From the NCBI GenBank assembly GCA_001655205.1, contig LPNZ01007618.1, positions 1-36,590 of the forward strand: DNA of 36,590 nucleotides, in the 5' to 3' direction. Of this stretch, positions 2,607-36,590 are shown in pieces (position 1 is the stretch's first letter; every line of letters begins with the position of its first letter). The notes under the pieces are model-generated. The model saw only the letters and a program-made list of their open reading frames with translations. It did no database searches and was not told where the DNA came from. The stretch is from Lenisia limosa. Its lineage: Eukaryota > Protista > Breviatea. Position numbers and translations under genes: made by a program.

Positions 2607-3443
2607 TTACTTGAAGCCAAGGTTTGTCAGGTCATCAAGAGGTGTCTGGAGGTCAAATAAGGGAAAGGGAAAATATAGAAATCCCCTTGAACGGAAAATC
2701 CCCAAATACAAATAAAAATACAAATAAAATAACTTGTTGTTATTCTCTTCGGGGCTATATATTCAAATATCACAAAAAAATAGTAACTGATAGAATTGTC
2801 TTACTCTGCTTGAATTATCGAAAGTTTCAGTTGGCGCGATCGTTTCGGAGTCACAGTCGTATAACGGATTGGCAGACGTAGAGGCCGCTGTTCCGGTGTA
2901 TAGTGCTGCGGTCGGAGGTAAGTTAAACAGGGAAAGTTTTCAAGACACCTCGGAGCCTAATATTTCATGCAATCTCGTTCACAAACTGTTTTGTGAAATA
3001 TTTCATGAGAGGAGAAGCACCAAGAAGCGGGAATCAAGAAATAGAATGTTGAGCGTGATGTTTTGCGAATAGTCAAAAGACCCACAGTTTTCCTTGTCAG
3101 CCCAGGTTTTGTCGTGTAGGCCTCGTCTGTACTTGTTGAACTCTCTTCTGCCTTGGTTGGCCTGGAACGCCTTGACACCTGCAATGGCTGCGGCTCCTGT
3201 GGGGGGTCAACTTAAAAAAGTGTCCAATGAAACAACGCACGTCTAAGAAGCGATCTTAATTAGTAAAATAAACAAAAACAAACAAAAACAATTAAGGCAC
3301 TATATCGGAGTGTAATAGGAATACAACGACACTTAATAATCCTTTTTGGGACAGGCTTCCGCCATACCGATTCCGGCAACACCAACGAGGGTAATGATTC
3401 CAGTTTGCACCGTTTCGGCTGGAAGTTCAATTGCAGCAGGCGT
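2607..3443 (-). CDS. Integrin beta transmembrane helix and cytoplasmic tail (4 exons)
   Basis: Exons 3443-3368, 3196-3086, 2905-2805, 2645-2607: GIITLVGVAGIGAAAIAGVKAF-QANQGRREFNKYRRGLHDKTWADKENSLYTGTAASTSANPLYDCDSETIAPTETFDNSSR-TPLDDLTNLGFK*. Confidence 0.85.
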
Positions 3444-15400: not shown

Positions 15401-15813
15401 GTCAATGGGGGAGGTGAAGAAAGCAACAAAGAATATGAACAGTGACTAAAAGAAGAAGAAAAGAAAAGAAAAAAAGTCGACGAAAAAACACGATTCAAGA
15501 AAGAATGAGATGCATCTGAAATGATCCCATGTCAATACCTCATGAATGCAGGTGTCACATCGGGTGATTTCAGCGCAATCTGTTGATAGTGAGAATAAGT
15601 TTCACGATAAAGAAGGGAGTTGCCGGATTTTAAAAGCCAGTAGTTATTGTCTGTACCACGGCTAGCTATAGAAACCACGGATGAAAGCTACGAGTCAAGA
15701 TAAATGCAGCATGTTGTAACCCCTTTATCAAGCATATGCAAACCTAAGCCAAGCACCACTGGGAGAACCACTAGGAAAATGGCAACGAAATCAAGCAATC
15801 TGAAAGATCGCAT
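2607..15813 (-). CDS. Integrin beta-like protein, ~55 exons (SP-PSI-hybrid-betaI/vWA-hybrid-~20 I-EGF-PSI-like-TM-NxxY tail)
   Basis: Phase-consistent GT-AG exons assembled by hand from ATG 15813 (MRSFRLLDFVAIFLVVLPVVLGL) to TAA 2609-2607. Integrin-beta motifs: LHPTTLNVFLRPG, PVDLLILEDLSTSFDDD, FGVASFVDKP, GGDIPES, LILLSTDAPYH, LAGLHNPNDG, DYPSVGQ..NNIFPIVAVT, GDSSNLV, repeated CSGxGxCxCGxCxC, RREF..W..ENSLY..NPLY. A few exons fall in N gaps; the last exon is less certain. Confidence 0.92.
3629..4092 (-). CDS. Second, membrane-proximal PSI-like module of the beta chain
   Basis: (CLDACTL)|IDQCSTCTDNDVIGCTWCPVSGE|TGTCFSTNDPPVVHPC from exons 4092-4024 and 3724-3629; same C..C.....C.WC.....C spacing as the N-terminal PSI. 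Confidence 0.72.
4447..12217 (-). CDS. About 20 tandem integrin-type EGF (cysteine-rich stalk) modules
   Basis: About 34 short exons with C-x-G-x-G-x-C-x-CG-x-C-x-C-x-x-G-[WYF]-x-G-x-x-C-x-C, e.g. CSNHGNCNCGVCEC, CSGQGVCNCGECDC, CSGHGSCICGSCDC, CSDHGTCNCGICEC. Counted by eye; module 2 is partly in an N gap. Confidence 0.88.
12813..14775 (-). CDS. Integrin betaI (vWA) domain exons
   Basis: Exons 14775-14708, 14568-14504, 14344-14257, 14117-14033, 13951-13891, (gap)-13656, 13467-13384, 13278-13159, 12893-12813 give DLSTS (MIDAS DxSxS), FDDD, SFVDKP, DIPE, STDA, PNDG, DYPSV, DSSN in canonical order. Confidence 0.92.
15118..15579 (-). CDS. Integrin beta N-terminal PSI domain (2 exons)
   Basis: DCAEITRCDTCIHE|PTCGWCSNPAKCSQGNEDGPFGEPC matches the PSI pattern C..C..C.....C.WC...C. 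Confidence 0.85.
15744..15813 (-). CDS. Integrin beta exon 1: signal peptide
   Basis: MRSFRLLDFVAIFLVVLPVVLGL followed by donor GTTTGC at 15743; phase matches the next exon (15579-15539). Confidence 0.8.
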
Positions 15814-16403: not shown

Positions 16404-19400
16404 ATGATCATCTGGCAGTTGAGCTCGTTCCTGTGCGCTCTCTTCTGCTTGGCTTTGCTTCCATTTAGTACAACAGCAATATCGGTGTCCACAGAGGCAG
16501 TCGCTCCCTCAACTTCGTCATCAGGCGTCCATTTCAATTCAGATGATTGGCAGATCAACCTGTCAACTGTTTCGGTATGTCCGTTCATGGTTGCTTTTGC
16601 GGGTTTCTGGGTGCTTTAGTCAGTCAAAACTTAGAAATATATATGTTATCATATAGCGTTATTTTTTTCCTCCTGTTTTGATTAGAGTTCCAATTCAATC
16701 AATCCGACATATTGTGAAACTCATTTCTTGAGTCTTGGTGTATCAATCTGAAATGTCATTCATGTATCACTGGATTTTTGATTGTTATGCTCCAGGTTCA
16801 GGACTACGCCTCACGGGAAACCCTCAATTGTGAATTCCACAATGTTGTCACCGTGGGTCGAGGGACGGTTCAGAGTGTGTCATTGATGTTCATAATGCTT
16901 TATGTTCTTCGCTCAAAACATACATAAGTAATGGCAAAAAGTTTTTCGTCACAACTTTTCCTAAAATAGGTCATTTTTTCTAAAAAAATATGTCATTTTG
17001 TAGGGATAAATATATTTCATTCTATTTAAGAACTTAATTACAGGTAATTTCAGACTAAGGTTTGCAATTTTTCCATCATATCGGATTCAGAGGTCGGTTT
17101 AACATTCGAGGCACGGAGTTTGTTATCAAGCAGTTGCCATGCATGCTCAATAGGGTTGAGGTCGGGACTTTGAGCGGGCCACTCAAGTAGAGTGTACGGA
17201 GAATCATTGAAGTACTTCAAACAGATTTAAAAAAAAATTAAAAGCATTTGAAAAATGGGGTAGGACCAATACAAACTGACCTTTTGCAGTATGCTTAGGG
17301 GCATTGTCCTGTTGAAAGATGGAATTCCTGAGGGTCACATGGCTGCAGCACATCTGAAGGANNNNNNNNNNACAAAATATTGAAAGTTCAATTCCATGCA
17401 AAGCAGTCAAAGTCATAGCTATTTTCTATCACTGATTCATTAGAACTGCATAAAAGATAAAATAAAGTACAACATGAATGTCACCATAAGCAGTCATCAC
17501 CTAAAACATCTTACTTCGAATGAAGGCTTGACCTGTCGATGAAGGATCTTGTGGAGGTACTCTTTCTTCATGCCCTTGATTTGGTAGAGATTTCCAACTC
17601 CACCTTTCCCAATAGCACCCCAGACAAGAACTCGCCCACCACCATTTTACATCCCAGGCAGTACCTTCCTTCCTCCAAACGCGAGCGTTACCATCAGGCT
17701 TGAACAATTGGAACTTTGATTCATCAGTCCACATGACACGGTACCATTTGGCAAGCGGCCAATTTAATCTTTCAGTTGCCCACTTCAGTCGATGTTCCTT
17801 GTTCTTGTCTGAAATCCATGGCTTTTTCCTTGCTTTATAGCAGTAATAGCCAGCTTCATTTAATCTTGAGCGCATAATGCGTTCTGATGTGGAAATTCCT
17901 TCTTCTTCCAGCTCCTTTTTGTGCTCAGTCACGGGCTTCAGTGGCTCGGAGGTGACCTTCTCCACAATTCGAGCATCTTCATCTTCTGTAGTTGTTCGTG
18001 GTCGTCCATTGGGCCTGTCGTTAATATGCTCATTTTCTTCTGAAACTTCGTTACACTAGCGATAAATACTTCTCTCGGACATTTTAAGCAGAGAACCTTT
18101 CATTTTGCGTCTAACTTTGACTGGAGACAAACCTGCACGTGCCATATCGTAAACTTGGCCTTTAGTGAGCCATTCTTTGGATTTNNNNNNNNNNNNNNNN
18201 NNNNNNNNNNNNNNNNNNNNNNNNNNNNNNNNNNNNNNNNNNNNNNNNNNNNNNNNNNNNNNNNNNNNNNNNNNNNNNNNNNNNNNNNNNNNNNNNNNNN
18301 NNNNNNNNNNNNNNNNNNNNNNNNNNNNNNNNNNNNNNNNNNNNNNNNNNNNNNNGCTAATTTATATTTAGTGAATGGAACCTTCCTAATTAGGAGGGTT
18401 TAATTTGGTGAATAAAAAAAATCAAAATGGATGCCAAAAATATGAATTTTGGTGCAATTTAGACTTAAAAGGACCTATTTTAGGAAAAGTTATGAAGAAA
18501 CTTTTTGCCATTACTTATGTAGTGCACTGTAAATGGTATGTATTGAGCTTTTCCCGACCTTATTATACCAGATTGTGATATCCTGTTTTGCTGAACCTTC
18601 ACGTTTCCTTGGTCTGTGTCACTATCCCAGGATGCCTCTGGTGGCCGTAAACACGACCTTATCATCGACTCCTGCGACAATCTCTCTGAACTGCCCCCAT
18701 GCATCGTAACAGTGGACGTCACTTCAACTGGTGGGTTGGGTGTCTCGTTTTTGGTGTCCATGTTTGGATGTTGGTGTGACTTAGTTTCGCTTTGCTTATT
18801 TTTGCTTTGGTCATTCTCTCACCCGTCTTCAGGAATTGACCAGATTGAGACCCACGCTGACGGATTTGTCGCTCGCATCGGATCAGAAATCGTCTTTAGC
18901 TACGGTGAGTGTACGGGTGTTTCACCAAAGTCAACATTTATCCATTGATGCTCATCGTCTCTCTTATATTTTTAAGAATAAAAAAATATGGATGTTGAAA
19001 AATACAAAACAAACGGGGTGAGACCTAGGGGACGGCTTCAGGTGTTGACATTCTCGAAATGTTTTTTCGAGCCTTTTCCGAGGCGATGACGAGGAAAAGG
19101 CGAGGAAGAAGCATTGAGAGAATAGAAACTCAGAGACGTACCTTGGGTTGAGGTTCCAGAAGGGACAAGACACCGGGAAAGTTCCCTATGAACATTTTGC
19201 GAAGAAGGTGAGACAAGTAGAAAGATTGCCATCCTGGACTTAGAGTTCTACATCTTTATAAAAACTTAATCACTTTCACCCATGTATGAGGCTGCGCCAT
19301 TTTTTTTTGTAAAAAATCTTACTCATGTTCCCGAGAGTCTAGACTTTTGAGCAAAAATGGCATAGGGATAAAATACAACTTTGAGATGACTGATACATCG

Positions 19401-22400
19401 TATAACATTATTGAATCTTATGTAATTATCTATCTTCTCTGTTTGGTGTCATGTAACTCCCCAGACGGCCTTCTAGTCCAAGATGCCCACTCGAAAACTA
19501 TCATATCACTCGCCAAATACACCGCAGAATCCGCCACGTTTGGCCGTCTCTCATTCCGAACAATGAAAGACTCAGAACTTCCGACAACTTTCGACCCTCT
19601 CGCTTCGAGTCATTCGGCTGTCTTCTCAAGTAGGTTCTATGGAATATTGAGCAGATATTTGAAAATCATATCCAAGCCTATTTTGTACCACGATATTGCT
19701 TATTTATGAGTTCATCTTTATTCAATTAGTTAGCAAAACCATCTTATTTTCTCTGTTCTTCCAATCTTTTCATTACTATGGTGATCCACTTTTAGAGTAG
19801 AGTTAAATATGAGTTATTTGTTACACTTGCAGGTATTGTGTCCAACACTTTTGCGCCATGCCCGACTGGGAGTGACCCCTGCTACATCCACATCACAACT
19901 GCAATGACATACAACGCAGCAGTGGAGTACTGCCATTCTTCGGTGGGGAGGGGAGAATGAGATAAACACAGGGCCTCGCTTCACTCCGAAAGGCTGCATG
20001 TATCTGAATATCTCAGAAGAATATCATTATTTTTAGTCTTTTATTAACCAGAGTGAAGCCCATGATAATCATAAACAGGGCTATCAACATGGGGGTCATC
20101 GCAGTATGACACATATTTTCCGTTGTTTTGATATGCCTTCTTTTCTTTTCACCTCTTCAGGGATGGTTTCTTGCAATGCCCTCGTCAAGTGCCAAGAACA
20201 TTGCCCTCACCGGATATATGTAGGCAATTATCCGAGAAATGCTGATATCAAATTCCATACAACATTTGTTGTCCTCTCTTGTATTTTTAATCCTGACTTG
20301 CAGGCTTTGCTTCTGTTCCTTTAATTACCATTTTTGTGATTTATAAAACAGGATCGTATCTATCATACTTTAACGTCTATTATTTTTTGCGTCATCATCT
20401 CCTGTTACCGGTTCCAGAAGTGCGGATTCCTACATCGGCCTTGCAGCTCTCAGTGGATCCGCGGATTGGTCTTGGGACACGGAGGAGGCGGCAACGTGGT
20501 TCAACTGGGATACGGGATACCCGGTAAGCGGTTGTCATCATCAGGATCGTCAACTCATGATTCAATTTGGAAATTGGACGGGGGTGAATGGGTGCATGTG
20601 GTGGNNNNNNNNNNNNNNNNNNNNNNNNNNNNNNNNNNNNNNNNNNNNNNNNNNNNNNNNNNNNNNNNNNNNNNNNNNNNNNNNNNNNNNNNNNNNNNNN
20701 NNNNNNNNNNNNNNNNNNNNNNNNNNNNNNNNNNNNNNNNNNNNNNNNNNNNNNNNNNNNNNNNNNNNNNNNNNNNNNNNNNNNNNNNNNNNNNNNNGCG
20801 TGACCATTGACTCCGCTGGAAATTGGCGTGATGCAGGCTGTGGTATGACTCTTCGTATTTTATGATTTGGGGAGAGTGATTATATGTTTTATCTTGTTCT
20901 CTGATATATTGGAATATTATACATCAGATCTTCCTGTGTTCTGTGATGTATATCTACATATCACATTGACCTTAGGTTTTAATGCGTATTCTTACCATCA
21001 GATGCTTCTCTTCCATTTACCTGCGAACGTACAACATCCAAGGTTAGTAGGTCGTGGTGTTATCTTTCATTGTTCCCTGTTTTCTTTTAATTTACATCTC
21101 TCGCATTTCCCGGGGGCCTGTGATTGTATGGCATAAACACGCCTCACTGAGTCTGACAATTGTCTATAATAATATAGATGGCGGGCTACAAGGAGATGTA
21201 TTTTCACTGATTTCATCCCATTTCATTAACTACGCCCCACAGGCGCCTTCCATGATGTCGACTCGTCAAAGCATGGGTTCCGCTCTTGCTGTTCTTGACG
21301 TTAACGGAGATGGGTGGGCTGGACCAGGATTGCTCTGGTGTATTTATTGATGTTTCTTGTCATAAATTTTCTGAATTTTTCTGATTATTTTGTTTTTGAG
21401 TTCTGAGCCTAGTTTTGAAGCCCACCAACTTGCTCCTGATTGTATTGTGTAGTCTATTTAAAACTTCCCTGGTTTACACCACTACTAGTATTGCATCTCT
21501 AAACACATAATTAATTACGCTGTATCACACCCTAGTATTTGAGAAATTTGACACCTCCAGTATTGAAGACCTTGTTGTCGGAGCCCATGCCTCAGGTGTC
21601 GACTCTACTGGTGGCGGCGCCATCCTAACCTATCTTGGGACTGCAGGCGGACTGTCAAGTCAAGCTGCAAGGTGGGGACAAAGGGGGTTTTGGTGGCATG
21701 AAATCATGTTGTAGTTTGCCGGACTATCTCGAGCTGTTTGGAAAATGGAGAGGGGATGAGTTGCATATGGTATTATACTAGTTCGTCAGTGGTTGAACCA
21801 ACAGCATATCTTGTATTGTCAGTGTCTCGTGGCTTCTTTAGTGCTGATAGTATCCTCCAGAAGGTTTTTTAAAAATTCGTATTTCCGATGCGGTATAATT
21901 CTTGTTTACCATCAATCATCGACTTACTTCTTTAGCATTGTTCGGTCAACCAGTTCCGGAGAAAAGTTTGGCTATTCACTCGCATCTCTAGGCGATATCA
22001 ATGGTGCGTTTGTTGTTGTTTTGTGTTGTTCATAATATAGTTACACAGTTTGTTGGATTCAGTTTTTTTTTGCTTTGTTTCCCCACTTTACTTCCCTTGC
22101 AGGTGATGGTCTTGATGATTTGTTGGTAGGATCTCCTTCAGGACAGCACTACTTCTCTGGCCTGGTATGATATCCATTTGGTCTTTGGTCCATTTCTCAC
22201 CACAGTTTCTTGTCACCTTTTAATTGGTTCTTATCGTTTGTTATTATTCACAATATTTCTGTTTTACAAAGTTCTTTTCTCCTTTCATATTCCCTATCGT
22301 TTTTAATACCCATTCTAATACCCAAGGTGTCCATCCATTTGGGAACCTCTGTCGGCCCTTCAAGCACGGCTTATCACACCCATCGAAACGCTCCGGTTTG

Positions 22401-25400
22401 TTGATGGGGGATCAGGGGGGTTAATTATCTTCTCAAAACTTTGTTAACAGCGCTGGCCATCCGTATTATTACCCCCCCCCCCGCAGGACGAACGACTTGC
22501 AATGTACGGCCAAGCCGTCCTGGCAGCAGATATCAGCGGAAATGGACTGGTCGATTACTTCGTCTCTACTCCTGCGGCGGATTACTACAGAGTAAGATGA
22601 CGAAAGGCCAGGGTTTAGCTTCCCTTCTCTCTCTCTGGAACTGTCTTCGCTTTGTTCTTCTTTGATTCTTCATCTCTGGATCTTAACTGTATTTCCATCT
22701 GTTTCATCTTCCAGGGCCGCGTGGAATGGTACCGACGAACATCTGGGGGTACCACCTTGGAAACACCCTGGGTAGGAGGAGTGGTTGATGCTCATGCCAA
22801 TTTACCTCCCTATATTTATCAATTTCTGTTTTGAGAATAAGAAATACTTGTTTGAAATAATAGAGTCGAACAAAACTAAATGGGGTATGGGGCGGAGGGT
22901 GTGTGACAAACCGAAACATCACAAAAACAATCCCGCTGCTGTTTACTATTGTAGCGTTCTACGGTGAACATTGTCGGTCCCAAACAAGTGGCGCTTCGCC
23001 AGTCTTTCTTCGGCAGGTCGCTGGCGGCTTGTGGTGGGGCTTGGACCGGAGGGAACTTCTTTTGATTTTTTATTTGCTTTCATTATCATTTTAACGTAAA
23101 CACAGTAGTATGTTGTGTTCCTATTGGTGATAATCCAATTAGCTACATGTATATATATGATATATACTACATGTATATACCTATATATACAGTGTATAGT
23201 ATATATGATATACTATATATCATAAATATATATAGATATATTATATGATATAAATGAATATTGTTTTTGAGAGGAATCACCCTTTCTGTTCGTGTTTCAT
23301 CCTCGTAGATGTCACTGGCGATGGAGTGAAGGATCTCATCGTCGGTGCTCCCCTGGATTCTGAAGCAGGTTTGTGCAGTTTGGTCCATCCAAGGGATCTA
23401 ATTTTGGAGGGGGTCCCTCAGAGGCAATATAAATGTTACTAAGGTGTAGCAGAAGGGAGGGAGGTGGAGAGGTCCCAAGGGCTAAAATGATATATACCAT
23501 GATATGGTTTGAATGACCATTCTCATGTACGCAGGCAAAGTGATGGCAGGCGGTGTCTACATCTACAAAGGTGGCCTTGGCGGTGTGACTGATAACCCCC
23601 TGCAAGCGCTTCCTGGTCTCCAAGTCGGGTCGTCCTTTGGCTTCAGGTTCGCGGAAAACTACCGGCGCCTGCGTATACTTCCTCTTTTTGTCTGACCTTA
23701 CTGTTTGATGTTATTTCGATTCATTTTTTTGTTGTTTTTATGTTCCATACTGTTTTTTTGCTTTGTTTCTTAAGTTTACCCCCCCCCCCCNNNNNNNNNN
23801 NNNNNNNNNNNNNNNNNNNNNNNNNNNNNNNNNNNNNNNNNNNNNNNNNNNNNNNNNNNNNNNNNNNNNNNNNNNNNNNNNTGCTGTTGGTGCCCCTCTC
23901 TACTCCGACAGACATCCAAACCAAGTAGGAGTTATGGGCATATCAGTACTTTACCAATGAAATTAATGTGTTTTTGTTGGCTAAAATCTAGTAAAATGTC
24001 TATGCATACGTATTGTGTGCTTTCATTTACAATTTATTCAAAGTGTGATTTGTATAATAGGGAATGCTTTCACTTTTTAATTGTATTTTTATTGCTTCGT
24101 CAGGGAGCAGTTTACGTCTTCGGAGGATCTGCTACCGGTGTAAAGACTATTCCCATTTGGCAGGTTGGCCTTTCGTGGCTGTTTTTGTTGTCTTTGTATT
24201 GGCTGCTTCATTGGTTGACGTGCCTTTTGTCGGTAGCTTCTGCCCAAACCATTTCTACAATAAAATTATATCATATGATTCCCAATCCAGTAACCAGTAT
24301 TTTATCCCTCTCGACATTATTCTGCGTCACCCTACCCTTTCCTCTTCTCTCTTATCCTCCTTTCCTATTGACATTTAAGCTGGATTCTAGTTCAATCTAT
24401 GACCTGTAGGTTGATTCAAATGAAGGGTTTATATTGACATGTGTTGACAAGATATAATTTAAAATTACAACTTGTCTGGACTAGGAACGAATTCCTCTCA
24501 GGTTAATGGATTAACGGAAGCATTTATCCATTCCCAAGGCGTCCAGTCCTGTGCTGCAAAAGGGGGTGGTGGGTGGGTGAAATGTCTTGTTTTAAAATTT
24601 GAGGGGAATTCAATTATTTTCTTAACTTTTATTGTCGTTCTGGAAAGTTCGTCATCCGAGGTATCGAGTGTTCTATTGATCTGAATTCAACCTCCCAATT
24701 AAATTGGTCCACTAAGTTAATTATTCTAACACCTATCCCAATGGGTGATGTTTTAGTAGGTTTTCCTGTTTCTTCTAACCCTCCAGATTGGTCTTTCTGA
24801 GCAATGTGATTTCAAGCAACATCCTGAAATCATCTCCTATTCTCTCATTTCTTTCTCTCTCTCTCCCTCCCCCCTTTTCTCTCCTTCAATAATGTCATGG
24901 ATAAAACGGATTTAATCCCCCTCCGGTTCCCTAAATATATCTTTTTTCCTGTTTTGATTTTTGATTTCTTTTTTCGCTAACCTTGCAGACCGAGGGTTCA
25001 AGGGGCCATTCTCAGTTCGGCTTCTCTCTGACCTCGGGCGGAGACTTCGACAAAAACGGCATTCCGGACTTGGTAGGTTGTCTGATTGTTTTTAATGTCA
25101 TCCATGAGATATGGTTAATATGCATGTCATCTACGTTATTACTACGTCTTCCATTATGAATGTGGTATCCAGACACTCATTTTTTGCGTACTTTATTTCT
25201 CTATATATAGTATGTCATCTATCCCCGTTCCCCCGATTCATCTTAAATCCCTGATAATTTTGAATTGGTTCACAATCCGCCCTGAGAAACTTTCTGCAGT
25301 TCGTTTTGTTCTCTTACTCTTACTCCCCCAAAGGTGGTCTCCGCGCCATACGCAGCCGAAAGTGGAGCCAGAGGCGGCTCGGTCTACGTCTACCATGGCG

Positions 25401-28400
25401 ATGCCACTGAGATTTTCGGCAAATGGGAGCCCCAGGAAATCAGCGGTGGAGACACTTTCGGCTTTGGCGTTGCAGCTGTTCCGATGGATATCAACAAAAA
25501 CGGTTATTCTGACCTGGCAGTTGGGTCAGGACATCCGGATGATATTTACAAGGTTCGTAGGTCAATAGTCGGTCTTGGGGTTGTCATTTTCATCAAATCT
25601 ACTTTAACGATCAATCTTCTTTCATACCGTTGATAAACGGTCTTAACAATACTTTGACCACCATTGGCTGCCGTAAATTTAATGAAGTTCTGGTTCATGT
25701 ATCGTCGAAGTTCACATGGATAAACATGTTCATTTTGCTGTTTATAATGGAAACCACTCTTAGAAATACTTCTATATCGTCAAGAACCCTTGATCCGTAG
25801 CCCCTGGTCAATGCCTGCAGCATTTTAACGACTTTAGACAGTGCCTATTCCCGAACAAGACGTCATCTACATGAAGGCAGTCATCAGGGACTTCAATACG
25901 TATAGCACTCCGTCTGGCACACAACATCACGATTTCGAGGTAGCCATGGTGTTATGGGAGAGGGTCAGTCCAGATTTGGGTGGATGTATGTGTGCGTGTA
26001 TCTGTTTTTTCATCTACCTATGTAGTCTCATCGCGTTGTATTTCAGAGATAAACAAAAATATTGAGAATGGAGAGACTAGAGATTACAATGTTTACTTCT
26101 GCTGTTGCCAGATATTTCATTGAGAGTTGCTATGGGAATTTACCTGGCTTCCTTTATTGTTGTGTCTTGCCAAGTATCCAATCATCAGTTCGTGAAACTG
26201 ACACACTCTAGATGCCTTGGGGCGCGGTTGACTGCAGTAACGGCTTCCTCTATGGCATGATTCGAGTGGGCGGGTTGATATTATCTTGGCCTGATATGTT
26301 ATACCATTTCGCATTGGCGTGGTAGCCATGCCTTTTTTACGTGATCTTTCAATTATCTATACACGGCAGGCACAAATGAGATTCATGATATTTAAGTGTG
26401 GATATTTCCATTCTAGATTTTGTCACCACATGTGTGATTTACTTGGAAATCAAGAGGGTCAAGTCCGATTTTCAATCACAATAAACCCCAGACCTTTTTT
26501 CAGACTTTGATTATGACTCTCCAGGGTAGCGGCAGCCAAGACCAGTGCGGATGGGATAATTGCCAAAACGACGCAGATCCTGTGCAGGGACGTGCAGACT
26601 GCAAGTAGGCTCTCTGATACCCATTAAGGCAATTCGCCACACTACTATATGATCATATAGGTGAAAGTAGGAAACCATAGATAGTTGCTATCTGTCTGGG
26701 GTATTATTTTTGAAGCTGACAAAGTGATGCAATGCATATATCATGATATTGTGGATAGCATCTATTTTTCTTGATTTACTGTATCCTCACCCAATCAGTG
26801 TTTGCTGTATCCCCAATGGCAGTGGCGCCTACAAAGAGATCTACGCTTCAGGTTTTTCCGGCATGACTACCGGTCTCTTGCAGCCCAACCTTGGAAGCTG
26901 CCCGGGAAGACTGTGTCGAAAGGTGGGGAGGGGTCATGGGGAGAAAAAGACGAGAATCTGAGCTTTATCATGATTCATGTATGAACGCTATTCTATGCCA
27001 AAAATAGTCCCATGATTGAAGTGTCGATACAATAGTCTGCTCTTTTCTTGGACTAGTGGTTTTTTAGTGGCGCCTAGGGATGACTAGACGGGCCCGGGGG
27101 ATGCATGATTTGGCGTGACCGAAATGTTTGAGTTCTTATTTCCTTAGCCGAGTCTTGTCGAATGTGCTGGAGGCGAACCATGCTCCAAATGTTTCCACAC
27201 CCAGGAAATGTTTCAGTCTTGGTATGTTGGATGATAATGCTGATATTCTGCCTCTTGGCAACACATGTCTTCGATGACCAACATGTCTTTCTCATATTAT
27301 TCTGTTCATAAAATGTCGGAATTTAGTTTTTTGCGTCATCCCATCTATTTATGTCCTCACCTCCTACAGGTATCTTGATGACAACCAATGGGCCCGGAAC
27401 TCAACAGTCTATATTGAACTTACTCGCGACCCAACAGACACGCGCTACTTCGTTTTCAAAATGAAACCTTCCGTATGTTGTTACCTGACAGAGCTGGTCT
27501 TTTCATTTGGTCGCTGTTCCCTAGCTATCTGATTGCGTTACATCGCTACACTATCATATCGTATACTATGTGTGTCTTTCTCGACCATTTATTTGAGATT
27601 CCGCTTTAATTAGGACGTCACTTCGGTACGAAAAAAGACTTAAATTCATAAGTCCTCGATACATGTCGATATTTCACCGTCGTTTCGAACCGAATTATCC
27701 CCACTATTAATATGTCTTGACAATATGACCATTTAGCCTGGTAACGAAAATGCCCAGTTCTTTGCTGCCGACCACATGGTTGGTTCAATACCAGGAATGA
27801 TTGAAATACAGTCATCATTCGTTTAGTCCAATGTGGTTTGGTTTAATTGATATTTCTTTATTTTTCCACACAGTAAATTTCGTTCTTAACCCGATTTTAG
27901 GTCCAGGATCCTGACTATCTTGCGGGCGAATCTCTAGGATGGGGCGACGTTTATTCCATTTCCGGCACCAACCAGTGGGTTATTGAGACCTTCATATCAT
28001 GTGAGATCATCATGTTCATTCAGTTGAGAAAAATGCATCATCATCATACCATCATGCAAAGAGCAATCGTTGTAGCAGCTGCATTTCAACAGTAAAATTC
28101 GGCCTCACTGCCCGCTATATCTTGGATTATTTGGCATTAATGAATCCAGTAACTTCGGTTTCACCTCGGAAATCAATTCCGACTTCGTATATCGAGGTGG
28201 CGAGGAGTTCTTCTTCTCTGGAGGTTGGTTTTAAGATCATATCATCTCCAAACTCAATTATTTACTTTTATTGGTTCTATCAGATGGCTCCTCCGGGCAG
28301 TTAATTTTCATAATATGCGTTTTATGTTGTTTTTCGACTGGATGTTTGAAAATGTTATCATTTGCAAGAACAATTACTGTATGATCAAATAATGTCACTT

Positions 28401-31400
28401 CATCGCAACTTTTCGAAAGACCTAACCAATTATGTCTGATTCTTATTTCTCTGTAGATGACGATGTCTGGGTCTTTATCAACAACAAGGTATTCAGACTT
28501 GGTCTCAAAATACATTTGAACGACGGCCAATTGTCTGACTTGCTGTTATTTCCCCGTTTTTTTTGCCTGGCTTGTGAAGTTCATCCCCCCCCCCCNNNNN
28601 NNNNNNNNNNNNNNNNNNNNNNNNNNNNNNNNNNNNNNNNNNNNNNNNNNNNNNNNNNNNNNNNNNTATCACTTTGGACTCCATCAAAACTTCGGTACGG
28701 CAACCTGTTCATTTCTGTCCCCCCTTTCCCAGTCGCCTAACTATTTTGTAAAACGGGTCAAACACTTTCCCCGAACACTCCAGATTATCACAGTCTAACG
28801 TAATGTTAGTATTGGGGACAATGGTCCAGTTGCCACAAAATCTGACTTTTTTTAGCATTCTTTGGAAGTTGGGAAGCGCTACAATTTCGACATGTTCCAT
28901 GTAGGCTCCAGGAAATATACTCGTTATTACAACTTTGTTAATTGTTGTTTTTGTTTATTTTTATATCTTATCTATTCCATATGTGTCTCATCAACCCAGG
29001 CTGAACGACATACAACGGCCAGTAACTTCGAAATCACAACGTCCATTGAATTTGACACTCAGGTTGGTTGCGGAAATACCCCATGTTTTTCATAAACGTT
29101 GAAGGCCCATAATTATAATATTGATGATATTACATACAATTCTTTGTAATTTGTTTATTTTGCTTTGTTTCTGACCCCATCCAGGCGACGTTGGAGACGA
29201 TCAGTCGTCGCGGCCATCGAGTGATGTTGTCGCAGCCTTCACCAGAAGTCCCTCACCCTGAGGACTTGAAACTCGCACAGGATCGTGAGTTATAGTCTCG
29301 AGTTAATTGGTCTTGGTTTCATTTCAATATTAGTTTTGTTGATTATGTGTGTGTGTGTTACATTTCTCTTGATTTCGTTTTTGTTTTGATCGTATGGATC
29401 ATTCTTTGTAATTCCATTTCCCTTTACTTCATCTCACTCTCCAGCCGAATCCAAGCCTTCGCCCTTGTTATATTACGTTCCAAGACAGGATACGGATGTG
29501 AGCAGTTCTTGAGAGGTTTAATAATATTTGCGTTTTTCTTCATGAACATTTTAACGCAAGAACCTTATTTTGGACCTGATTGACTTTTCCGCAGATATCT
29601 CGCGACGACCACACCAACTCACGGAGTGTTGCTGAAGATGAAATGTCCCTTATTGATCGCCGTGATGCTGCGTCGTGTTCAGGCCTCTATGCTGACCATG
29701 CGTGTTACACATTCCATACCTTCCCGTCAACGCACAGCCAAGTATGCAAATGTGACTGTTTTAAATGTTACTCCATTATTGTTGTTATATTTCCATCACT
29801 CATGATCCCCATATTTAACATCGTTGTCTTGCGCAAATGTGGTATAACTCAGTTCAGGCGTATTTGTTATTTGATATCAACTGTCACCAATTTCGTCCAG
29901 GTTGTCGTCTTATGAACCACTTTTGTGTTATATGAATATCATATGATATAAAGTATGGCCCAATTCTTTCCCCATTCACAATGTAGTCTGAAGCAACCTG
30001 CCTCGGCATTGGCGGCCACTTGGCGTCCGTTCATTCAGCGGAACTTAACGCAGAACTCAAGGAATTGGTCGAATCCAAATTGTCACCTGGTTGGTCGTGG
30101 TGCATCGGCTGGTAGTTTTTCTACTTACTCTTGTTCGTGTTACTAGTGGCTGTGATTTAGTTCAATTTGACACGATCTGTGAGGAGAACCCCCAACCTTC
30201 CACCGTTGAAGTTGTCTCCACTGTACCTTTTAGCTTCCATTATTTTTGTTGATATTCTGTTTTGACCCCCTCAGGAGCGTGGGCACACATTGGGGCTTCC
30301 GACACAGTGTCTGAAGGCAACTTTGTTTGGACCGACTCCACCGCTTTTGACTTCGGAACTACCGATAATGTGGGAATGGATGATCATTGACAGTCTTTAT
30401 TTGACATCTGTTTATTTTTTTATTTTAAAATTGTGGGAGTATTGCTTCATTTTTTATTTGGATGTATTAACGTTTGTTTTCAAATTGTATTTTGAGTTGT
30501 GAATCCTCAATTCCCAATTATTTTTCAGGTCTACCCTTGGGAAGCCTTCGAACCGAATGACCTTTCAGGAGTATGCTGGACCTGTTTCATTGTTCTACTC
30601 TTCATATGCTACTTATGCTCAAGTACTTCTTGTTTATATTGCCGAAATGTTGTTCTTTCTAATTTTGATGATTTAATTTAATAATTTTGTTGGACTCCCT
30701 GTCCTACACAACAACTATATTGATAATGTTACCATATATGACCCGTTCAGTCCGAAGACTGTGTCGCCATCACCTCGCTTGGCTATTGGAAGGACGTTTC
30801 ATGCTCCATCGCGTCCAGCTTCATCTGTCGTGTTGCCTACGACTGCTCTGTGGTAAGTTACGGCAACTTTCAATTTATTCTGCTTCTTTTGTTTTCTTCG
30901 ATTCACATTGAACGGGCGACCTTCGAATCATTTTTAAGTGTTTTATCGGATACAAAGTATTGTCTTGGTGACTCGATCCACATGTATGCGATATATTTTT
31001 TGGTCGCTTCTTCTGTTTATTTAATATTCCAGGGTGGCTGTACAAATGGCATCTGCGAAGGTGACAACACATGCCTTTGTGCCAAAGGATTTATTGGGGA
31101 AAAGGTACGCGAGCAAAGAATAATCAGACGCGATAATATTATGATGTGTCTTTAAGCCAAATTCGTAAAATCTAGGATAATCAAGATTTAACGATTCCCA
31201 TTTTGTGTGATATTCATTTTTCCACCAACCTACTAATTATAAGTTGATCCCCATTTTGCAGTATTCCTTTTTTATCTCAAACCTACATATCATACGTTGA
31301 TTCCCGTTTAGTGCGATGTTCCCTGTGACGCAACCGGCGGTGTAGACAATGGAAAGGGAGAATGCGTGTGTAGAAACTGTTTCTTCGGTGACACTTGCTC

Positions 31401-34400
31401 TTCGACTTTGCCGGGTGAGTCCCATTCTCAAGATCCATTAACATGATGCAATATTTCAAAAACATACTTAAAATCCACCCATATCTAGGAGGTGTATTGA
31501 GTGGGGATGGTAGGTCAGGATTTTCATCGAAACAGGCTCGCCACGTCATCAGCTTCTACTTGAGATATTTTTTTTCGTCACAGAATGGTTTCTAATGCAC
31601 TTCAATCAACATGCCTAGAGATATTATGTTGAGCGTAGATGGATGACTCGCGTATCACCTTTGATTATGGAAATCGAAAGTTATTACTGGATACAAACAC
31701 CTTTCTCGATTCCTGTTTTCATTATTTATTACTCAAAGCTCACATAAACTAATTAGGAGTATTGCGGAGATAGTTCTAACTATCCTTGATAAATTTTTGA
31801 AAGTGAAAAATTCTGATGTCGGTCAGCCTGTCTGGGATCGACCCAAATTTTGGGCCACCTACTATTATATCCTTTTCATATTAATGACCCCCCTTAGTCG
31901 AAGATGACCCAACCTCATTGTGCACCGGACATGGAACCTGTGCTTCTTCAACTGGTACGGCTGTGCTTTACGTTAACAAAATAGTGATACTTTGTATCTC
32001 CATTGTCATTGTCACTCTCTTTCAATTCTATTCGGCACTTAGTTTGGTCTCGTTCTTGTTTCATCTCTTTAATGACTTTGGCATTGACCATTTCAGGACT
32101 CTGTAGCTGCTCCTCCAACTTCTTTGGCGATAGTTGTTCCGAATGCAAATCCGGATTCATTGGTCCTGACTGTCTCGAGGAATCGCAGTTTACCGGGTTT
32201 TTGACGGATAGTGTAATGGTGACCCCTCTTTCTCGAGCGGTTGACTTCGCCGATTTCAATCCGGTGGGTTCCTAACTTTCCGTCAAAAACTGTTCAGATG
32301 ATACTCTGTTTTCTTTATTTTTCTCGGAATTTTTTGTGTTTTGGCAGTCTGTATTGTTATCACATATTTCGCTATCATGATAATTCGACACTTGAACTGT
32401 TATTATTATCAGGCCGCCTTCCGCCTTTCGGCTGAGCTTCTGCCCGTATCGATGACCTCAGTGCTCCCTAAGGTCATTGTTGCCCTTGGTGGTGACTCTG
32501 ATAGTACTTTCCTTGGTGTTGCTCCAAATGGAATCTCATACATGGCTCAAGTCAAGCTTTCAGACGTGGGGGGTTGTGGCTGTCAGTTTGTCTGTCTTCC
32601 CAGCGTTTTTATGAACACTGTGAATTACTTCTCTTACGGTTCAGGGTTCTGTGGTGAAAATTGAGGCACTGAATAGTGTGACACTCAATACCTGGCAAAC
32701 GGTCGAGTAGGAGGGGTTTTTTTTTTGTATTTCCTGTTCTCTCTTCAGAATCAATACCAATCACATCATACTCCATTGCTATTTATGAATTTTTGATAAT
32801 GTGTCAGTTTTCGCTCTGACCTCTCCAGACTGGTCTTCGAAGATGATGTTCTGTCGATTCTCGTCAACAACACGGTTCTTGCCTACACTTCAGTGGAACT
32901 CGATGCGTCACCTGGTGCGTTGGGGTGAACCTTTGTTCATTCTTGTGTGGAACATTTTATATTAGTTCCCTTGTTATTGATATGTGAATATCTAGTGCTC
33001 TTCAAGTGGTAACAAGACGCCCAGTATTTGCATAATTTATTCACATAATGTGTAATAGTATCCTTTTTATTTTTGATATTTTAGTGTCCCTTGCTATTCA
33101 TGTTGGCGGAAATGGTGCGAGTTCAAACCCCCTGCCTGGAACTGTAAGCTTTGGAAACAAATTATGACAGAGATAAAAGGCAAAGGAAATGGGCATTTTT
33201 TGGCTTTGAATCATTCATTTCCTATTTTTTTTGTTTCCAGTAAATATTTCATAAGTTCTGCTGTTCCTTTCCTGATATTTTTTGATATTATGTTAAAAAC
33301 ATCGGTGCCCCCCACTCCCACCCCATTTGTGTGCCTTATTGACGCACCGTTCACCTACCACAGTTGACGAACGTTCTCGTGGCCTTGGACCATTCCGGCC
33401 CAGCAGCGTACCGCCTGCCGTCTTTCATTCAACCGGAAACTGCGGCCATCATCATGAAGTGGGAAGGGATCTCTTTGTTATGCATATGTAAGTATAAGTT
33501 AATGTATTCATATTGTTCAATCTACCTCGTTAAAACACAATGAGAAAAACATCTGTTAGTCTTATAAATGGTGTATTCAACCATTGTAATCATCTGGAAT
33601 GGATAACAGCAAAACTAAGTTATTGACATGAATTTAACTAACTTGTATTCATATCTGAGGTATCTTGCTTGTCTCCACATAGTTTAGTTTCATTATCTGA
33701 AGGTCTGGCGAAGAAATCTTTTTGTCACATGATTCAATTGGTCCAAAGGTGCCTCGAAATGGCGATTTCGTCATCACTGGAAAGGTCTGGGGAATTTATT
33801 GGGGGTCTTTCGATATCATACACCTTACGTTCCTTGTTATTGTATGTCACGTTTATGACGTAACGTTTGCTCCAGATGTCCGGGTTTTCAACGACTGCCG
33901 GCCTATTGCGTGAAGAGTACTTGGTGTCACTTAACAACCTTCCATCTCAGGTGGGCCTTTTCGGAGTCCCATTAGACAATGCAACTATTGGAAACATGTT
34001 CATGTCATTTCTGACATTTGTTAATTTTCATAGTTTTATCCTTTCTTGATCTGCAGGCTGTGGTTGGTTGCGTTTTTTTCATTACCATACTGACTCTGAG
34101 TTGAGTTGTTGTTTAACGTACATGTATTTACAATATTTGACTTCCAGTTCTCGTTTCGTTTTCATTTTATTTGTTTCTAAAGTTACCACCCCCAGGACTA
34201 TTATCTGACCAACACGCCCAAGACCTCCAGAATCGCGTCCAATATCAACATGAAGTAGGAACCTGGGACGTTTGATTGTTAATCAAACTCTTCATAAGGG
34301 ATACTAGCTCTGTTATTGTGTTGTAAGTTCTTCATCCGTTAACCCTCATCAGCGATCTCTACCAAGACGACCATTTCCTTCTGCGCTATCTCGGACAGAT

Positions 34401-36590
34401 CCGAGTGCACAGTACTGGTGGGCTGTTCTATCGATTGTTTTTGTTATTTATAAATTATTTAGCATACATTTGCTGAACCTGCTTCTTGTGTCGACTTCGC
34501 TTGTTTATGTTGTATTCATTTATTTTCATCTCATATTCATATTTTTATTCAGTTCAGTTGGCCATTGCTATCATATTTGAGCACATTATATTCTAAGAAA
34601 CCTTTTTCCTTCTCCTCTCCAGCTATATATTAACCCTCCAGTTGGCTCCACCTGTACCTTCATGTGCCAATAATATTTTCTTCTTCTCTTGGTTATTATC
34701 CACCAGTTGGCTACACCTGCACCTTCATGACGGCCTCGGACGACGGCAGTGACTTCTGGCTTGACGGCGTCAGAATTGTTGGCTTTATGGGAAGGGGGGT
34801 GCTGCATTATGTTGTTCTCTTGAGGAATGTGATCGGTTCTGTGTTTTCCATGTTTCCTCCATTTCATTAATCTTTATGTGACACACGACAGGTTGACAAT
34901 GACGGATTGCATGGCACTGTCACTGTTTGGTCCAGGTGGGAGCCCATATACCATCTATGATCGTTAATATGCTACTTTGATGATATATTTTGAGATTTGC
35001 TCCAAAATAGTATGGTGTTCTATCTATGAAATACTGTGGGACGATATCATATCGTAAAAGTATTAGGGGTGTTATATTTAATATTCCTTATTTTTGTGTG
35101 TATATTTCATCATTTACATAGCAATAGGGAATATATACCTTTTTTATTATTATATCTATGTGTCTATATTGCGTCACCATTACAGCTCCGTCTATGTGTC
35201 ACCAGGCCATCATGAAATTGCGGTTCACATGTTCGAGAAGGGTGGTGGAAACACACTCACTGTAGGTGGGATTCACTGAACTATCGGTGAACAACAGTAA
35301 CATTGCGGGGCGGATTTCACTGTCATCATTAACCGCAAATTGGAAATAATCCCGAGGGTGGTGGCTTTGGTGTTTGGTTCACTTGACATTTAATATTTTA
35401 TAGGTTCTGTTTTGTTTTTTTATTCATTTCTCGAGGTGTTGATCCTTTCAGGTGCAATATTCCTGTTCAGGTCTTGGTTCCGGCCTAATTCCAGATAGCT
35501 TCTTTTCCTACTCCGGTAAGTTAGAGACAACCTTTCTGACTGTATCGCGTTGGGCCCTGATGACTTTGTGTATTTCACACCTTCATTGGGAAGCGCCTTT
35601 GAACGGTTTACATTCTCGTCTCACAGTTAACTGTTCTGGCTCTCACAGTTTTGTCCAGTTATTTAACAGTATTGTTACTCAGAAACTTCCTTATTTGGTA
35701 TATAAATTAGAAACCTTCCTGTTGACCAACCAACTAACTCCCCACCCCCCAGTTGTCTCCGAGCGGCACCTCATCAAAACGCCTGCAGTGTCGATCACTT
35801 CCAACGCAGCCACTCTTGGTGCCCATTTCACTGATGTCCTTGGAACTGTGCATGATGTTGCGTCTAGTGTAGGCCTCGGAATTACGCTTTATTCCGTACT
35901 GATATGACACTTCAAGTGTTGTCAGATGGCCGTTCATCAGCCTTTCAGATTTCATGTTGTGAAATGCTGCATATTCTGCAGCATTTTCAGTCATTTTCCA
36001 TCACTAAACTGTAATACAGCTTGTTTATCACTCAAAAAAACCTACAATAACGATCTCAGGCCCCTGCTCTCGAGGACGAAATTTCTATCGAAGTCAGCAA
36101 AGTCGGAAATACGGTCACTGTCAAAAACCAGGGTGCCACGCTTTCCAGTAAAACCTTGACATCGACACTGGCCAGATCCATTGTAGGCGGTCAAGTATAA
36201 TTAAGACTGTTTATGGTACAAATCATTTATCTTTTTACGTTTTGTTTTTTTTTCACATGTTGTTATACATCTTCATCATATTTGACCACAGGACCCACCA
36301 AAAGTATGGTCTCTTTTATGNNNNNNNNNNNNNNNNNNNNNNNNNNNNNNNNNNNNNNNNNNNNNNNNNNNNNNNNNNNNNNNNNNNNNNNNNNNNNNNN
36401 NNNNNNNNNNNNNNNNNNNTCGGTAGGACCCGTCATATTTCGGTGTTGGCCAAGTCGGGTCTCTCTCAGATGTTGTAATCTATAACAGTGCAACCAAAAC
36501 TTGTAACGGTTGGGGGTGGGGGATTCAGGAATATCATTGATTGGATGAAAGAAAGTGTATTATTATTTTTTTTTGGGGGGGGGGGGTGTA
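16404..36590 (+). CDS. Integrin alpha-like FG-GAP mosaic protein, >60 exons, 3'-incomplete (SP-N domain-CTLD-7xFG-GAP-fibro-slime-CTLD-EGF-LamG-PA14-...)
   Basis: Starts MIIWQLSSFLCALFCLALLPFSTTA. Phase-consistent exons traced to 36194 (APALEDEISIEV...IVGGQ) and probably beyond. No stop, TM or GFFKR seen in the window, so alpha identity rests on the 7 FG-GAP repeats and adjacency to the beta gene. Confidence 0.82.
16923..16972 (+). repeat. Left terminal inverted repeat of the Tc1 element
   Basis: Near-perfect reverse complement of 18472-18519; differences are limited to a short central stretch. Confidence 0.9.
17070..18184 (-). pseudogene. Decayed Tc1-family transposase
   Basis: NGRPRTT, VMWTDESKFQLF..DGNARVWR, GGGRVLVWG, IFQQDNAPKHTAK, EWPAQSPDLNPIEHAW. 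In-frame TAG at 18058-18056, a frameshift near 17645 and apparent introns. The 5' end lies in an N gap. Confidence 0.88.
18472..18519 (-). repeat. Right terminal inverted repeat of the Tc1 element
   Basis: Reverse complement CATAAGTAATGGCAAAAAGTTTCTTCATAACTTTTCCTAAAATAGGTC matches 16923-16972. Confidence 0.9.
19833..21042 (+). CDS. C-type lectin domain 1 (N-terminal to the propeller)
   Basis: CPTGSDPCYIHITTAMTYNAAVEYCHSS|GWFLAMPSS..|SYIGL..WSWDT..WFNWDTGYP|(gap)VTIDSAGNWRDAGC|DASLPFTCE. Confidence 0.85.
21243..25552 (+). CDS. Seven FG-GAP repeats (integrin alpha beta-propeller)
   Basis: MGSAL..DVNGDGIEDLVVGA; FGYSL..DINGDGLDDLLVGSP; YGQAV..DISGNGLVDYFVSTP; FGRSL..DVTGDGVKDLIVGAP; FGF..(gap)..AVGAP; FGFSL..DFDKNGIPDLVVSAP; FGFGV..DINKNGYSDLAVGS. 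Confidence 0.9.
23144..23255. repeat. Degenerate (TA)n low-complexity tract in an intron
   Basis: TATATATGATATATAC... directly visible; similar shorter tracts near 560-612 and 3517-3607. Confidence 0.8.
25838..29062 (+). CDS. Fibro-slime / PA14-type domain
   Basis: AVIRDFN..HHDFE, WYLD, FFAAD, HNFGFTSEINSDFVYRGGEEFFFSGDDDVWVFINNK, YNFDMFHAERHTTASNFEITTS: the signature motifs of the fibro-slime family (Dictyostelium PsiA-like proteins and bacteria). Confidence 0.88.
29595..30852 (+). CDS. C-type lectin domain 2 with EPN motif
   Basis: CYTFH..SQ|SEATCLGIGGHLASVHSAELN|WAHIGASDTVSEGNFVWTD|WEAFEPNDLSG|SEDCVAI..YWKDVSC..FICR. Confidence 0.87.
31033..32263 (+). CDS. EGF / laminin-type EGF repeats
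   Basis: GGCTNGICEGDNTCLCAKGFIGEKC; GECVCRNCFFGDTC; CTGHGTCASSTGLCSCSSNFFGDSCSECKSGFIGPDC. Confidence 0.85.
32413..33460 (+). CDS. Laminin G / concanavalin-like domain
   Basis: AAFRLSAELLP..IVALG..LNTWQTVELVFEDDVLSILVNN..IHVGG resembles the LamG3 pattern (N.W.HV..V.D....LYVNG..L.IGG). Confidence 0.6.
33876..35515 (+). CDS. PA14 domain
   Basis: GLLREEY..SRIASNIN..DHFLLRYLGQIRVHST.GYTCTFMTASDDGSDFWLDGVRIVDNDGLHG..GHHEIAVHMFEKGGG..LIPDSFF. Confidence 0.88.

Follow-up and report, generated by a model that had tools for sequence, protein, structure and literature searches.

A plus-strand gene of the breviate Lenisia limosa (contig LPNZ01007618.1, positions 1 to 36,590; we refer to this whole stretch of 36,590 nucleotides as the window) encodes what may be the alpha-like chain of a protist integrin, paired with the beta chain of the neighbouring gene, a reading on which we find our confidence evenly divided. 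Under this reading, the alpha-like chain would begin with a signal peptide and have as its head a calcium-binding FG-GAP propeller of seven blades, and this propeller would dock on the beta-I domain of its partner chain, which is encoded 590 base pairs (bp) away on the other strand. Behind the head, a fibro-slime/PA14-type domain would stand in place of the animal thigh, to be followed by a C-type lectin domain of the EPN type, then by three EGF spacers, an unassigned beta-rich module and a probable second PA14 domain, and a further C-type lectin-like domain would lie directly ahead of the propeller. The flanking modules would form at least the upper stalk and may supply further points of attachment, perhaps for glycans of bacteria or of the substrate, with signalling expected to run through the NPLY motif in the tail of its partner. 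Membrane anchoring, pairing with the beta chain and sugar binding of the alpha-like chain are all properties that we infer.

The FG-GAP propeller and the neighbouring integrin beta gene

A sequence-only reading of this DNA had described a complete propeller of seven FG-GAP repeats, and our analysis bears this out (21243-25552, plus strand). Pfam FG-GAP profiles match in five exon open reading frames (ORFs), with E-values between 5e-5 and 9e-3 (Pfam, PDB and Atlas were searched exon by exon throughout, which is an insensitive way of searching). The spliced propeller of 390 amino acids (aa) aligns over its full length with database FG-GAP proteins (~31% identity, E down to 3e-41), and six cation motifs of the form D-x-[DNST]-x-[DN]-G-x-x-[DE] recur at a spacing of 60-66 aa in blades 1-4, 6 and 7, the position of the blade 5 loop coinciding with the assembly gap at 23791-23881. 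The propeller carries no inserted I domain, for which it has no room. In PDB, nearly all matches of the exon at 25334-25552 are to integrin alphas, led by alpha-6 (E 9.3e-13) and followed by alpha-4, alpha-V, alpha-IIb and alpha-5; the 50 best are integrin alphas without exception, and two MreC chains at E ~0.4 are the sole matches of another kind. The exon aligns at the blade 6-7 position of integrin alphas, with its last cation loop on the blade-7 site. As judged from these features, the head resembles integrin alphas in its fold and its repeats but is of an all-blades-calcium kind. That is, motifs in blades 1-3 in addition to blades 4, 6 and 7 make up an all-blade pattern, as in bacterial FG-GAP propellers, whereas in animal integrin alphas the cation-binding loops (D-x-D/N-x-D/N-G-x-x-D) are confined to the last three or four blades.

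The strongest argument for the plus-strand gene as a partner chain is the integrin beta gene that lies head-to-head with it on the minus strand (2760-15813). This gene is recognized by a signal peptide, a PSI-like Cys motif, the MIDAS sequence DLSTS, the segment DYPSVGQ...AVT and an NPLY motif, and its start (~15813) and the ATG of the alpha-like gene (16404) are 590 bp apart and divergent. Its exon at 13154-13300 matches only integrin beta-2, -7 and -6 in PDB (E 1.8e-3); one other beta exon gave no PDB match. The NPLY motif falls in the tail region (~2766-2939), and the beta gene appears to keep a talin-type tail motif. Within 2766-3476 on the minus strand, a hydrophobic stretch resembling a transmembrane (TM) segment, GIITLVGVAGIGM, and the NPLY motif lie on separate downstream ORF pieces.

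Non-Ig modules behind the head

In animal-type integrin alphas, an Ig-like leg (thigh, calf-1, calf-2) stands directly behind the propeller. Here, the start motif of a fibro-slime domain (RDF...HHDFE) begins ~17 aa past the last FG-GAP repeat instead, and no Ig-like leg is seen directly after the propeller in the region up to 36590. The fibro-slime/PA14-type domain (25838-29062, plus strand) is supported by the TIGR02148 model (90 positions, cut-off 45 bits): three consecutive exons match it collinearly, covering positions 2-26, 23-38 and 72-89 with scores of 19, 20.9 and 17.3 bits; these sum to 57.2 bits, although no single exon reaches the cut-off. Besides the start motif, the domain shows GDDDVWVFINNK and FHAERHTTASNF. 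Model positions 39-71 are matched by no exon: one part falls in the gap at 28596-28666, and the rest can be read as the motifs ITLDSIKTS and HSLEVGKRYNFDMFH, the flank past the gap running in frame from ITLDSIKTS on to a GTACGG donor.

The order of modules first proposed for the next part of the gene, a C-type lectin domain and then EGFs after the fibro-slime/PA14 domain, likewise holds up in profile searches. The C-type lectin domain behind the fibro-slime domain (domain 2; 29595-30852, plus strand) matches Lectin_C at E 1.1e-3 and 1.4e-4, the latter at model positions 78-106, and mannose-binding protein A and other collectins in PDB at E 2.5e-3; its first exon also weakly matches Chordopox_A33R, a family of the C-type lectin-like fold. 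Domain 2 keeps EPN and the following Glu and has WKD for WND. The three EGF-like modules (31033-32200, plus strand) match EGF_laminin at E 9e-6 and 26.2 bits, above the cut-off of 21, with further matches to EGF_2, EGF_Teneurin and EGF_alliinase. They are followed on the same strand by an unassigned module of ~185 aa whose exons score as coding (32200-33458), by a putative PA14-like domain (33703-35515; motifs GYTCTF..SDDGSDFWLDG and HEIAVHMFEKGGG) and by the two last modelled exons (35753-36182; ab initio scores 19.8 and 16.9), which encode ~80 beta-rich residues.

Whether these modules replace the leg, as had been suggested, is a separate matter. None of the 32 non-propeller exons matches an integrin leg family at E values up to 10, which, given the insensitivity of exon-wise searching, is weak negative evidence; it agrees with the earlier remark that no thigh or calf domain is recognizable in the region read. 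The part of the claim that stands is that non-Ig, lectin-type modules come immediately after the propeller. The word "replaced", on the other hand, exceeds the data, since the final ~80 residues could begin a leg: they have no Pfam match, and in Atlas the last exon shows a sub-threshold likeness (0.80) to the Ig-like beta-sandwiches of Por_Secre_tail/FlgD, so that a conventional leg starting here is only a lead.

The N-terminal region and a second C-type lectin domain

Exon 1 (16404-16574, plus strand) opens with the first ATG that its ORF contains, and the hydrophobic stretch behind this codon reads by eye as a signal-peptide-like N-terminus; the end of the exon is an ab initio prediction. 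An unassigned module of ~110 aa in three exons follows after intron 1 (18631-19629, plus strand); it was recognized by its coding score in the ab initio model and has no match in Pfam or PDB. Between this module and the propeller lies a C-type lectin-like domain (domain 1; 19833-21042, plus strand) that the sequence-only reading had not listed and whose end is separated from blade 1 by fewer than 10 residues. No single exon of domain 1 gives a significant Pfam match, and we identified it by its motifs (a C..C start, IGL, W.W and the ending WRD..C-D-ASLPFTCE, which a split codon completes). The signature of the C-type lectin fold (a Cys framework, a WIGL-type core and a C-terminal W.D..C....C) is thus found in both domains, in domain 2 by profile and PDB and in domain 1 by motifs.

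Domain 1 has Y-P for E-P and WRD for WND, and one ligand position is hidden in the gap at 20605-20797, which lies inside the domain. In both lectin domains the Asn of WND is exchanged for a basic residue (WRD at 20523/20524 and WKD at 30529-30852); this shared departure may reflect a non-canonical binding mode or the loss of calcium site 2. Single-sequence hhalign comparisons of lectin domain 1 with domain 2, and of PA14-like region 1 with region 2, were uninformative.

Gene model and splicing

Protein collections hold no annotated product of the alpha-like gene, and we therefore wrote a splice-aware dynamic programme of our own to obtain a gene model. This ab initio programme combines codon log-odds with trained GT-AG splice-site matrices and was run on the plus strand with the transposon and repeat masked. 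The resulting model has ~60 exons with GT-AG introns, runs from the ATG at 16404 to 36182 and encodes ~1,830 residues without reaching a stop, the gene passing the end of the window. Five phase-neutral micro-exons in the model are probably artefacts of the dynamic programme, and we put the gene at ~55 exons. Two groups of first-pass exons were dropped, namely those at 16796-17993, which are antisense to a transposase, and those at 24502-24805, which lie within a high-copy repeat.

The junctions find support in two independent checks. Codons split across predicted introns supply the Gly, Gly and Asp that would be expected in three of the cation loops, and a low-scoring exon of 41 nucleotides (21002-21042) completes a textbook C-type lectin ending. 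The donor sites after the last propeller exon read GTTCGT or GTAGGT and indirectly favour splicing onward to the next modules. We infer that all exons belong to one transcript.

Weighing the alternatives

Several observations weigh against an integrin alpha chain and are gathered here. Among 1.84 billion representative proteins, those that match the propeller best over its full length come from bacteria (a WOR-3 FG-GAP-like repeat protein, T9SS-sorted proteins and MYXO-CTERM-sorted proteins), and a GFFKR tail occurs in 0 of the 150 best database representatives. The motifs in blades 1-3 depart from the animal-type cation pattern, and the TM segment and GFFKR would lie past 36590, where the gene is still open. 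The only RNA run, a polyA run of 47 million letters, gives zero coverage of the alpha-like gene, and the transposon in intron 1 makes gene decay possible. With respect to the flanking modules, the complete ligand set for calcium site 2 and sugar (EPN or QPD, Glu, WND) is present in neither lectin domain. The module at 32200-33458, previously taken as LamG-like, finds no match in Pfam, PDB or Atlas exon by exon, any resemblance to Laminin_G_3 being a sequence reading, and a second PA14 domain, also proposed earlier, reaches just 12.2 bits (E 0.16) with Pfam PA14, although at the right place in the model: the match falls on a single 23-aa exon (34709-34777) at the correct positions 63-80, and the other exons give none. 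PDB searches of the exons of the "LamG" module, the PA14 domain and the N-terminal region gave no match.

Part of this evidence would also suit a stand-alone mosaic adhesin, surface-bound or secreted, in which a bacterial-type all-blades-calcium propeller is combined with lectin-type modules and no beta chain is bound, the adjacency of the two genes being coincidental or due to shared regulation. The bacterial FG-GAP proteins that match the propeller best from end to end, at ~31% identity, the presence of cation motifs in at least six of the seven blades, and the fact that neither leg nor TM segment nor GFFKR is seen within the window all speak for it, and published work bars FG-GAP proteins of other protists that have no membrane topology from the integrin alphas (10.1101/2020.04.29.069435). 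However, among solved structures only integrin alphas match at equivalent blades, with the reservation that structures of other FG-GAP propellers are few, and the start codon lies 590 bp from that of an integrin beta gene in divergent orientation. We consider an adhesin of this kind unlikely, if still a serious contender. Alternatively, two or more adjacent plus-strand genes may have been merged in our model, for instance one encoding signal peptide, C-type lectin domain, propeller and perhaps fibro-slime domain, and another encoding a separate secreted lectin with the order C-type lectin domain, EGF, unassigned module and PA14. No RNA connects the parts, the 530-bp stretch at 29063-29594 holds weak predicted exons only (an uncertain plus-strand linker of two ab initio exons at 29185-29497, with scores of 11.1 and -0.4), and the last fibro-slime exon, if unspliced, reaches a stop at 29093. 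Yet a donor (CAG|GTTGGT) sits exactly at 29063, right after that exon, and inspection by eye of the plus-strand frames overlapping 29063-29760 revealed no ATG followed by a signal peptide ahead of the second lectin domain. The strand skew is also uniform: AT skew is positive over 1-16 kilobases (kb) and negative over the remainder of the window, a switch that fits one minus-strand gene and a single direction of transcription, on the plus strand, over the alpha-like gene. Further, the strongly scoring exons all chain in phase and the micro-exons are phase-neutral, although in-phase chaining is a weak point of the argument because the dynamic programme chooses splice sites freely. Taken together, we regard a merger of genes as improbable.

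A third possibility, that this paralogue of a breviate integrin alpha has been silenced or is decaying towards a pseudogene, would account for the lack of expression in the polyA run and for the Tc1/mariner remnant in intron 1 and the high-copy repeat in the intron at 24300-24900. Its domain motifs are nevertheless intact, including cation loops that are completed across introns, no exon requires a frameshift or stop read-through, intronic transposons are compatible with function, and one RNA set of this small size is weak evidence of silence; decay therefore strikes us as very improbable. Within the preferred reading, i.e., an alpha-like chain paired with the neighbouring beta chain, a stronger version can be formulated, namely a true heterodimeric integrin in which the Ig-like leg of the alpha chain has been swapped for lectin-type modules, with a C-type lectin also on the head, and in which inside-out and outside-in signalling via the neighbouring beta chain is coupled to glycan recognition. 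To this version we give little credence at present.

Relation to known integrin alphas and lectin receptors

The closest published concept is that of the "Type II" integrin alphas of Amoebozoa and Ministeria, which have novel domains flanking the head, namely EGF, TSP1, the carbohydrate-binding WSC, kinase and extensin (Kang et al., bioRxiv 10.1101/2020.04.29.069435). The present gene resembles them in having an FG-GAP head with cation motifs beyond the last blades and flanks foreign to animal alphas (EGF in both; in the published cases, WSC N-terminal to the head). Type II alphas are defined by a head of at least three blades with at least one FG-GAP/cation motif, for which seven blades and six visible motifs are found here, and by a head-flanking domain unreported in integrin alphas, for which the fibro-slime and C-type lectin domains qualify. 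In head and flanking domains the gene thus agrees with the Type II concept. As to the third defining feature, membrane docking (a signal peptide and/or TM region), the window shows a signal-peptide-like N-terminus as read by eye, and a TM region would lie past its end. It is unlike the published proteins in size (523-1200 aa for those vs. at least ~1800 aa here, with the end beyond the window) and in that its head is flanked on either side by modules of the C-type lectin, fibro-slime/PA14, EGF and PA14-like kinds. Neither the paper by Kang et al. nor its supplements contain an occurrence of a C-type lectin, and PA14 appears in the paper only for a separate ORF on the scaffold of a Mastigamoeba beta gene, its InterPro identifiers being absent from the supplements (10.1101/2020.04.29.069435). 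The earlier caution that mosaic alpha chains might already have been reported was well placed, given that WSC-bearing and Laminin_G3-bearing alphas are published (10.1101/2020.04.29.069435). In the open literature searched, we found no paper combining FG-GAP, PA14 and C-type lectin, and the published list of mosaic Type II proteins would thus be widened by a combination not found there.

Compared with alphas of the animal type, the gene departs from the family in two features, namely the distribution of its cation motifs and the Ig-like leg expected behind the head. Some other protist alphas keep Ig-like repeats in the leg. The integrin alpha of Thecamonas trahens (2114 aa) has two Ig-like repeats and a Laminin_G3 domain in a C-terminal extension, together with a TM segment and GFFKR (10.1101/2020.04.29.069435); it is similar to the present gene in placing a non-Ig, ConA-like module in the stalk of a protist alpha, a comparison that here depends on a LamG-like call without tool support, and dissimilar in that its Ig-like leg repeats are retained and its TM segment and GFFKR proven, whereas neither leg nor tail is seen in our window. 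The giant breviate alphas, LenisMan47 of Lenisia limosa itself (3346 aa) and that of Pygsuia biforma (3312 aa), end in GFFKR and carry at least 11 Ig-like/DUF11 leg repeats (10.1101/2020.04.29.069435). They share the FG-GAP head with the present gene but have Ig-like/DUF11 legs where lectin-type modules directly follow the head here. The published table lists this single Lenisia alpha, and the present paralogue is absent from it (10.1101/2020.04.29.069435).

The bacterial FG-GAP proteins (e.g., MCX7995130.1 from a WOR-3 bacterium) are alike over ~400 aa at ~31% identity and in having a cation motif in every blade. They differ in having two or three tandem propellers, bacterial sorting signals and no flanking modules, whereas the present gene is intron-rich and eukaryotic. 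A search with the exon at 25286-25630 among the 1.84 billion representative proteins found neither a product of this gene nor a close orthologue, the best matches being many-repeat FG-GAP proteins at 35-45% identity, and the database representatives gave no match outside the propeller. With the fibro-slime proteins (TIGR02148; Dictyostelium, Fibrobacter) and PA14-domain adhesins, the gene shares the RDF..H.DFE start, the GDDDvWVFIN core and the AERht..Snf end of the domain. We know of no FG-GAP propeller in fibro-slime/PA14 adhesin proteins; in the present gene, the domain occupies the position of the integrin thigh.

Which ligands integrins had before the animal extracellular matrix is an open question, and this locus suggests a class of ligands that can be tested, i.e., glycans of bacteria or of the substrate. 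Other protists have lectin receptors whose tails resemble those of integrin betas, namely the Gal/GalNAc lectin of Entamoeba and the mannose-binding protein of Acanthamoeba (PMC12686525). These are similar in functional idea, with lectin recognition outside and an NPxY/talin-type tail inside; their organisms have no integrin heterodimers, and in them the lectin itself bears the tail, as opposed to lectin-type modules that would sit on the alpha chain here and NPLY on a separate beta chain. The locus would therefore join two solutions to adhesion that are known separately in protists, integrin heterodimers and lectin receptors with integrin-like tails. If a heterodimer with lectin modules were real, the breviate could use it to hold or sense bacterial prey or surface-attached Arcobacter partners. 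The value of the locus is limited until its membrane end and transcript are shown.

Assembly gaps, repeats and further observations

The window is intron-rich eukaryotic DNA of ~40% GC with 12 gaps of Ns. As a check on these gaps, contigs of DNA run X1 were aligned to 20500-26480, which bridged two of the six gaps in the alpha-like gene. A single X1 contig of 5.8 kb spans both 20605-20797, where it supplies 194 real letters, and 23791-23881, where it supplies 48, and the DNA is therefore continuous at both. With the 194 letters in place, the left and right flanks of the first gap are in different reading frames. This is as expected, since the left exon closes at 20523 with a strong donor (CCG|GTAAGC) and the next acceptor must fall among the gap letters. 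In the second gap, the exon encoding ...AVGAPLYSDRHPNQ would have to start within the 48 hidden letters, which are about the size required for the missing blade 5 cation loop. A second X1 contig (13.6 kb) covers 24901-26480 and extends rightward for 12 kb of its length; if collinear, it would also span the gaps at 28596-28666 and 36321-36419 and pass the window end by ~1.9 kb. Four exact-ORF look-ups and an exact 39-mer scan of metagenome contigs, aimed at sequence past the window or within its gaps, returned no match, and no related loci were found among metagenome contigs.

Gaps and the window end adjoin long homopolymer runs of C or G (23785-23790, 28585-28595 and 36567-36586), and the loose end of one contig reads ACCCCCCCCCCCC; breaks of this kind look like homopolymer-driven assembly failure rather than missing biology. 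Two further gaps, 17362-17371 and 18185-18355, fall in intron 1, where they bracket the remnant of a Tc1/mariner transposase (17504-18055, minus strand), which lies antisense in this 2-kb intron (within 16575-18630) and matches Pfam HTH_Tnp_Tc3_2 at E 7.7e-15. In the intron segment at 24300-24900, the word depth of contigs rises up to ~507x vs. ~31x around it and several short contigs break; the segment looks like a high-copy dispersed repeat and contains a length variant of 58 nucleotides at 24532-24591. Finally, the intron between the blade-4 exons carries an imperfect TA-rich tandem repeat at 23150-23255 (periods of 2, 11 and 28), at which depth rises locally to 66x.

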